Virus record (IMG/VR): IMGVR_UViG_3300047994_000374
Span: 310,001-374,000 of that record
Length of the DNA stretch: 64,000 bases
Strand: one strand, 5' to 3'
Numbering within the stretch: position 1 is the stretch's first letter; each line of letters begins with the position of its first letter. The notes under the pieces were generated by a model. It worked only from the letters and a program-made list of their open reading frames with translations, ran no database searches and was not told where the DNA came from. Position numbers and translations under genes: made by a program. Positions 23,704 through 23,777 of the stretch are shown here, in pieces.

Positions 23704-23777
23704 TGCCCTTTGAGAATTTCGAAATCTCGCAACACATCCTGTTAGAAGGGACGGCTCTGCCTCTGAGCTAAAAGGGC
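23704..23777 (-). tRNA. tRNA, anticodon CUA in canonical register (probable amber suppressor; Arg-UCU is the alternative reading)
   Basis: GCCCTTT TA GCTC-AGAGGCA-GAGC C GTCCC-TTCTAAC-AGGAT GTGTTGC GAGAT-TTCGAAA-TTCTC AAAGGGC A; 7-bp acceptor stem; CCA not encoded. Confidence 0.75.

Follow-up and report, generated by a model that had tools for sequence, protein, structure and literature searches.

Stop-codon suppressor tRNAs carried by phages are usually explained as a means of reading a recoded genome. The amber suppressors supE, supF and T4 psu1 are elongator tRNA bodies with a CUA anticodon that compete with RF1 at UAG, and each arose in the laboratory by a single-step mutation of an essential or duplicated tRNA. 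Suppressors have also been described in phages that are not recoded. The Xanthomonas jumbo phage XacN1 (about 385 kb) uses the standard code and carries CUA suppressor tRNAs; it has 18 amber stops for 592 proteins (about 3%), and in-silico readthrough gave no target genes (Yoshikawa et al. 2018, PMC5852040). Borges et al. (bioRxiv 10.1101/2021.08.26.457843) described low-GC phages that deplete a stop codon and then acquire a suppressor tRNA without recoding, their examples including a phage with 4 of 146 genes ending in TGA and a standard-code Agate phage with a TGA suppressor. In the recoded phages of the same study recoding appears first in the structural region, and the release factor RF2 recognises UAA and UGA, not UAG (10.1101/2021.08.26.457843). 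Al-Shayeb et al. listed RF1, RF2, tmRNA and initiation factors in huge phages and did not discuss suppressors. The phenomenon has thus already been reported, in XacN1 and by Borges et al.

The locus described here lies in a stretch of 64,000 nucleotides (the window, whose numbering is used below wherever no other sequence is named) from a huge-phage genome, G000. Like XacN1, G000 has the standard code, a CUA tRNA, few TAG stops and a Thg1-like gene. XacN1 nevertheless falls outside the clade of G000, with no match to its portal protein and a Thg1 only 31% identical, and its long terminal repeats contain the suppressors within a set of 56 tRNAs, whereas G000, with 3-5 tRNAs, carries its own in a PTH2-tRNA-IF3 module and has an RF2 in addition. 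The standard-code phages of Borges et al. share >80% ANI with recoded phages, were read as transitional and come from the gut; our clade shows no recoded member in 75 loci, consists of deeply diverged genomes and inhabits moss and soil. The TAG-recoded (code 15) Lak and crAss-like phages share with G000 the combination of a CUA tRNA and a phage RF2, but they have many in-frame TAGs in late genes and a low code-11 density, where G000 has no such TAGs and is dense in code 11. Compared with supE, supF and psu1 the window tRNA is a natural and conserved gene with unusual stems, and a Gln-like character is found only in some of its clade paralogues. What is new here is the large uncultured clade, the apparent purifying selection on the tRNA, the PTH2-tRNA-IF3 module and the mismatch at positions 31·39, together with the co-occurrence of RF2 in every near-complete genome and a near-zero use of TAG without recoding.

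Results

The window covers bases 310001-374000 of a 394,192-bp virus record (G000; 36% GC, estimated 92% complete) in which about 90% of the genes are on the minus strand. Contigs holding the locus come from moss and soil metagenomes, and the runs that hold it are all listed as probable DNA ('DNA?') or as of unknown kind, none being on record as RNA. No close DNA relative of G000 was found among deposited phages, and the nearest isolate by portal protein is Bacillus phage G at 33% identity. IMG/VR holds 188 stretches that encode a relative of the G000 portal, and the 80 of these that were used further are 64-76% identical, on contigs of up to 481 kb. G000 belongs to an abundant uncultured clade of huge phages. 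The proteins of G000 have a median identity of about 50% to those of the relatives G001-G003 (100-143 reciprocal best hits).

ARAGORN found a single tRNA in the 64-kb window, a 75-nt minus-strand gene (23703-23777) whose anticodon is cta. The original prediction, which gave no strand, had proposed an amber suppressor at this place with CUA at positions 34-36, and Infernal with the Rfam tRNA model RF00005 agrees with ARAGORN on that anticodon. Searched as an 85-nt input, the tRNA scored 37.4 bits (E 3.8e-7; 23704-23777, model positions 1-71; gathering threshold 29 bits) in a full-length alignment that places CUA at 34-36 and contains two non-standard pairs only. The same model missed the tRNA on the whole window, on a 301-nt stretch and on the whole genome because of its speed filters, which are laxer for the 85-nt input, and the suspicion of a pseudo-tRNA raised by these misses was dropped as a filter artefact. 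Under the same conditions the other tRNAs of G000 scored 34.7-39 bits. The scores of tRNAs in relatives are 45-73 bits.

The acceptor stem is a perfect 7 bp (GCCCUUU/AAAGGGC) followed by U8 and A9, and the D arm (GCUC-AGAGGCA-GAGC) has A14, G18G19 and A21. The anticodon arm reads GUCCC-UUCUAAC-AGGAU, as originally predicted, and its closing C-A pair is the C31·A39 mismatch marked by RF00005. The remaining features of that prediction were likewise found in the sequence: a variable region of 7 nt, which is a 4-nt insert relative to the RF00005 model, a U53·U61 pair (T-T in the DNA) at the top of the T arm (GAGAU-UUCGAAA-UUCUC), and a 3' end (G1-C72, discriminator A73, then CUA) in which CCA is not encoded. 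The nucleotides of the tertiary interactions (U8, A14, G18G19, A21, T54-Ψ55-C56 and A58) are present, with G53-C61 replaced by U53·U61, a pair also seen in a possible G003 orthologue. The minimum-free-energy fold is the cloverleaf; its energy is ordinary compared with shuffled sequences (z -1.33) and argues neither way. Several of these features, namely U32/C38 (C32/A38 in relatives), C31·A39 and U53·U61 (near-universally G53-C61), depart from those of efficient suppressors and would weigh against a working suppressor.

Two other identities were considered and rejected. The arginine register (UCU), which the original prediction had set aside as destroying the anticodon stem, indeed has no stem to support it and was chosen by neither ARAGORN nor Infernal. 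ARAGORN labels the gene tRNA-Pyl, its default name for any cta anticodon. The body of a tRNA-Pyl has a 6-bp anticodon stem, a 3-nt variable loop, a small D loop that lacks G18G19, and no TΨC; the D-loop GG, the T-loop UUCGAAA and the 7-nt variable loop of the window tRNA do not match this body.

Comparison with relatives showed that the tRNA is conserved beyond its surroundings. A contig (L098) is 92.2% identical to the window over 4.8 kb and the 45 nt upstream of the tRNA are heavily changed, whereas the tRNA itself is identical in the relative (L098/L099), with 0/75 differences against 374/4823 in the DNA around it in L098 (P about 0.002). In contigs of runs X5 and X8, too, variants lie on both sides of the tRNA and none inside. 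This pattern points to purifying selection on the window tRNA. At larger distance, CUA tRNAs occur in all ten clade genomes that hold the region (G000-G007, G009 and G011), with one or two in each relative, and none of the tRNA species compared resembles the window tRNA more than the 'type b' CUA tRNAs of G001 (65%) and G002 (61%) do. Compensatory changes were found at 13 of the 21 cloverleaf pairs among six orthologues, and U33-CUA-A37 is invariant in 15 CUA tRNAs of the clade. The homologues therefore show neither the UCU register nor the pseudo-tRNA status that the original prediction had named as grounds for its rejection. Because a 92%-identical relative has exactly the same tRNA and CUA tRNAs are kept across the clade, we rejected relic status.

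The unusual features of the tRNA also recur. All nine type-b orthologues (L048, L049, L050, L051, L221-L224 and the window tRNA, 23703-23777) have a non-Watson-Crick combination at 31·39 (C·A, C·U, A·C or A·A), and other CUA paralogues in the same clade pair normally at this position. Type-b tRNAs likewise encode no CCA. Since the mismatch is common to the whole type-b set, C31·A39 is a conserved trait, and together with the missing CCA a mark of the lineage and not of decay. As a side observation, the mismatch effectively makes a 9-nt anticodon loop in type-b tRNAs. The discriminator and acceptor stem differ among the CUA orthologues. Some clade paralogues have U1-A72 and G73, the signature of bacterial tRNA-Gln, and the window tRNA has G1-C72 and A73 instead. 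An origin as the relic of a lost tRNA-Thr array, suggested by relatives in which Thr tRNAs follow Thg1, was rejected; the window tRNA is nearest to the CUA tRNAs of relatives, not to tRNA-Thr, and sits where they do, after PTH2.

G000 has 3-5 tRNAs compared with 57-67 in G001 and G002, which cover all 20 amino acids in addition to their CUA tRNAs, and the suppressor is one of the few tRNAs that G000 retains. The other four tRNA calls of G000 all lie at 35-66 kb. This falls within a part of the genome (G000:1-100000) where the density of long ORFs is 0.70-0.74, against 0.92-0.98 elsewhere, and where many genes are short.

The tRNA stands between two genes of translation. Upstream of it by 41 nt lies a PTH2-type peptidyl-tRNA hydrolase (23818-24150, minus strand; Pfam PF01981, 41.4 bits) that scores below the NCBIfam Pth2 cut-offs, and a PTH2 gene is found upstream of the CUA tRNA or tRNAs in G001-G006 at distances of 31 nt to about 1.9 kb. 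Downstream is translation initiation factor IF3 (22330-22860, minus strand; Pfam IF3_N and IF3_C; NCBIfam infC 183 bits, cut-off 60), which occupies the corresponding position in G001-G004, G007, G009 and G011. A consensus scan returned a promoter-like site on the minus strand (23789-23816, 10/12 matches) with TTGACA at 23816-23811, a 16-nt spacer and TAAATT ending at 23789; it is a consensus match only and we treat it as a putative promoter. Its TTGACA is kept in L098/L099 despite a diverged spacer. Directly downstream of the tRNA is an ORF of 82 aa (23417-23665, minus strand), also present in L098/L099, whose ribosome-binding site and start lie inside the conserved stretch that follows the tRNA; no family match was found for it in PHROG or Pfam.

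Upstream of the module is a Thg1-like gene, a tRNA-His guanylyltransferase or tRNA 5'-end repair enzyme (24709-25461, minus strand; Pfam Thg1 and Thg1C, PHROG 4717), which is 59-63% identical in relatives and is followed there by tRNA-Thr arrays. In G001 and G002 the array directly after this gene consists of four tRNA-Thr with all four anticodons. Ribosome-rescue and quality-control genes adjoin the locus, PTH2 in the window and tmRNA in the relatives L001 and L006. The tmRNA genes, at L001:5677-6037 (tag ADESAFAMAA) and L006:5548-5911 (tag ANDNAFAPLALAA), are just downstream of tRNA-Thr genes; ARAGORN found no tmRNA in the genome of the window. A second and divergent Thg1-like paralogue at 62087-62839 (minus strand) gives G000 two Thg1-family genes. 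By tblastn it is about 26% identical to the Thg1 of relatives, and it has a 58%-identical counterpart in G002. Elsewhere in the window the ranges 2523-5923, 13340-15220, 47601-49712 and 56820-58691 hold SbcC/SbcD-like genes, a type IA topoisomerase, a GHKL (HATPase_c) ATPase-domain protein, an NAD-dependent DNA ligase and, beside an ATPase, a DUF2201 metallopeptidase/VWA protein, a set of replication and repair functions that is usual in huge phages.

TAG is rare as a stop codon throughout the clade. In G000 the 492 genes end in TAA (301), TGA (178) or TAG (13, or 2.6%), and TAG ends 18 of 391 genes in G002, 8 of 351 in G001 and 5 of 259 in G003, a range of 1.9-4.6%. These four counts come from our own simple, crude gene caller based on codon scores, and homology-based counts agree with them. 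The avoidance of TAG stops, which the original prediction had noticed by eye in the window, therefore extends to the genome as a whole, where TAG is rarer than in the controls given below. The 905 kb surrounding the portal gene in 75 further clade loci contain just 6 TAG-ended ORFs among 700 with homology support, or 3 of 551 when the C-termini align, an overall range of 0.5-0.9%. As a near-neutral control we counted the next in-frame stop downstream of each real stop on the same strand. TAG made up 16.9% of these in G000 and 17-26% across the four clade genomes, so base composition is not the cause of the depletion; pooled over the four genomes, the odds ratio for TAG at real versus downstream stops is 0.11 (p 2e-62). 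As a further control, the annotated sequence of T4 was counted over its first 50 kb and gave 8.2% TAG stops. This is higher by a factor of only about three, so that some of the depletion may be usual for a low-GC phage; the clade lies three- to ten-fold below T4.

Within the window the only gene ending in TAG is the HNH homing endonuclease at 8932-9441 (minus strand; PHROG HNH families), as the earlier reading of the stop list had it; its 30-codon extension is non-significant and its orthologues in G001-G003 end in TAA. The idea that TAG-ended genes are recent mobile arrivals proved weak, homing endonucleases making up only 2 of the 13 in G000. An ORF of 417 aa with a TAG stop, located a short way upstream of the window (G000:301989-303242), matches phage DNA polymerases in their C-terminal part only (positions 793-1082 of 1190), which suggests a split polymerase gene. 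In G002, three consecutive small genes (G002:15725-17127, locus L052) account for 3 of the 18 TAG stops of that genome, and readthrough would fuse the first two, which share a frame. One comparison counts against the mechanism that we propose below: other phage contigs with similar CUA tRNAs appear, in a crude count, to use TAG stops freely.

TAG as a sense codon was not found. ORF coverage of G000 is 0.886 in code 11 and 0.902 with TAG as sense, a gain smaller than that for TGA or TAA. No in-frame TAG with coding signal on both sides was found in G000 by the codon-score scan and none was crossed by a homology alignment, and the 75 clade loci, structural region included, gave none in 269,441 aligned codons. 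This bears out the original view of a genome whose long genes are intact in code 11 and which is not recoded. Candidates for hidden TAG recoding in relatives proved to be artefacts of the antisense strand, to belong to adjacent genes, or to be sporadic nonsense codons, with TAG, TGA and TAA all represented. G002 has two well-aligned in-frame TAGs in conserved ORFs (G002:88964-89404 and G002:41194-41430), at positions where the orthologues have Glu and Arg. Because that genome also has a TGA in frame at a Trp position and a TAA at a Glu position, these look like ordinary nonsense changes or sequencing errors.

The original prediction had further supposed that TAG might be kept free for regulation of the phage's own genes, and for this we found no support. 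There are no in-frame TAGs, a TAG stop is conserved in 1 of 26 orthologue pairs, and the readthrough extensions of TAG-ended G000 genes, three of which run for 30-40 codons, have no coding signal. Conserved programmed readthrough was rejected on the same grounds, and no phage gene was found that needs the suppressor. Back-up stops near TAG-ended phage genes showed no excess (p 0.21), a result that counts against the proposed mechanism.

G000 also encodes a full-length class I release factor, outside the window (G000:106874-107962; locus L097:1408-2496, minus strand). It scores 341 bits with prfB against 184 bits with prfA, though the strict prfB cut-off of 370 is not reached, and the SPF motif of RF2 is found 45 residues before GGQ in G000, G005 and G006. 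RF2 is present in all three near-complete genomes, that is G000 and the complete relatives G005 and G006; it was not found in the incomplete genomes of relatives, which counts against the mechanism. The phage genomes yielded RF2 only and no RF1. The G000 protein is 38-42% identical to RF2 of diverse bacteria, and inference of the host from it was uninformative.

Synthetase searches, with PF00152 and PF00587 for class II, detected no GlnRS/GluRS, class IIb synthetase or member of the LysRS/AspRS family in G000. By the identity rules of E. coli, the combination of U35 and A73 points to LysRS, and GlnRS too is apt to charge tRNAs with a CUA anticodon. A lysyl-tRNA synthetase above cut-off (NCBIfam lysS, 501 bits) is encoded at L136:1018-2637 (G001:8822-10441), in G001 alone, where it could matter for charging CUA tRNAs via U35. 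The PolyA_pol family is represented in G000 by a 255-aa protein. Relatives have another member of roughly 419 aa, probably a CCA-adding enzyme, which is missing from G000.

Discussion

TAG is avoided in either role, stop or sense, in a clade whose CUA tRNA appears to be under selection, and ambiguity of UAG in the infected cell is therefore the simplest reading. We consider it somewhat better than even (a probability of roughly 0.55) that the tRNA is a working UAG suppressor, predicted from its sequence and set in a conserved PTH2-tRNA-IF3 module, that acts on mRNAs other than those of the phage. We infer its expression, charging, suppressing activity and target as follows. The tRNA would be transcribed from its own promoter-like site and processed, and CCA would be added by a nucleotidyltransferase, either a host enzyme or the 255-aa PolyA_pol-family protein of the phage. 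A host synthetase reading U35, most likely LysRS or GlnRS, would charge it, and the charged tRNA would compete with host RF1 at UAG, while the phage RF2 with its SPF motif could keep termination at UAA and UGA efficient without RF1. UAG would then be ambiguous in infected cells, partly suppressed and partly terminated, and would cost the phage wherever it stood, at the end of a gene or within one, which could account for its purge from phage genes in both roles. With UAG harmful to the phage in either role, the effect of the suppressor would therefore fall on UAG-ended mRNAs of the host or of co-resident elements, giving extended products or stalled ribosomes. The PTH2 and IF3 genes beside the tRNA, and tmRNA in relatives, would fit a need for ribosome recycling.

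A host-directed version of this model can be offered only tentatively, and we think the odds are against it. The UAG-reading tRNA and RF2 might together form a genetic-code takeover weapon carried by the whole clade: phage genes would be immune, TAG-ended genes of the host, of competing phages and of defence systems would be read through, and PTH2, tmRNA and IF3 would recycle ribosomes for the phage, with the 31·39 mismatch as part of the tuning of the tRNA. Among the three purposes offered by the original prediction, regulation, disruption of the host proteome and an early step toward reassignment, disruption of the host proteome is the one that we prefer as a candidate.

The main rival to a suppressor acting on non-phage mRNAs is that the clade represents a pre-adaptive or stalled intermediate on the way to code 15, in which low GC depleted TAG, the suppressor was acquired later and recoding has not begun; the tRNA would then be of little present use beyond tolerating stray amber mutations. 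Depletion followed by acquisition of a suppressor is the very course of the Borges model, which includes the standard-code phage with a TGA suppressor, and a GC of 36-41% and the joint presence of RF2 and a CUA tRNA, the toolkit of the TAG-recoded Lak and Agate phages, suit it as well. An early step toward reassignment, as originally suggested, describes the pattern well; it sits badly with the persistence of this state at about 50% median protein identity, among portals 64-76% identical, and with a structural region, the usual starting point of recoding, in which 269,441 aligned codons include not one sense TAG. A neutral passenger would moreover not stay identical when its flanks are down to 92% identity, nor survive in the tRNA-poor G000, and we regard such an intermediate as unlikely. 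The phages could instead mirror a host with little or no RF1, in which UAG is a poor stop or is decoded as sense. The tRNA sets of G001 and G002, which serve all 20 amino acids and include CUA tRNAs, would agree with such decoding, as would the finding of a phage RF2 and no RF1; a host with UAG as sense predicts some sense TAG in its phages, however, and none was seen. We know of no bacterial lineage with TAG reassigned to sense besides pyrrolysine use, and find this explanation quite improbable.

It seems still more doubtful to us that the suppressor serves the phage's own genes, through programmed readthrough or through TAG in short or orphan genes beyond the reach of our scans. The 13 TAG-ended genes of G000, three with extensions of 30-40 codons, the three consecutive TAG-ended genes of G002 and its two well-aligned in-frame TAGs at Glu and Arg positions could be taken as traces of such use, but the extensions are devoid of coding signal, TAG stops are kept in a single one of 26 orthologue pairs, G002 has in-frame TAA and TGA in conserved genes as well, and XacN1 gave the same negative result. 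Least credible is a decayed or non-decoding tRNA-like element, left over from a large tRNA set or serving another RNA role. Its appeal lies in the U53·U61 and C31·A39 pairs, the long variable loop and missing CCA, in an Rfam score of 37.4 bits against 45-73 bits for tRNAs of relatives, and in the far smaller tRNA set of G000. That score nevertheless matches the other tRNAs of G000 (34.7-39 bits), the 31·39 mismatch recurs in 9/9 type-b orthologues, CUA is invariant in the clade, and a decaying element is hard to reconcile with a tRNA identical in a 92%-identical relative.

The presence of a CUA tRNA and RF2 without recoding separates the purpose of a suppressor from recoding. The state of the clade points to an action on other genomes in the cell, as we favour, or to a long-lived ambiguous codon that is avoided. 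A stable state of this second kind is predicted by the theory of codon reassignment and has rarely been seen. The residue inserted by the tRNA, and its efficiency with odd pairs at 31·39 and 53·61, would be useful for the engineering of suppressor tRNAs. A further unusual tRNA was seen in an unrelated viral contig (L041:10090-10167), where a gene with an 8-nt anticodon loop (ARAGORN 'ccta') adjoins a CUA tRNA and is a possible quadruplet or frameshift suppressor.
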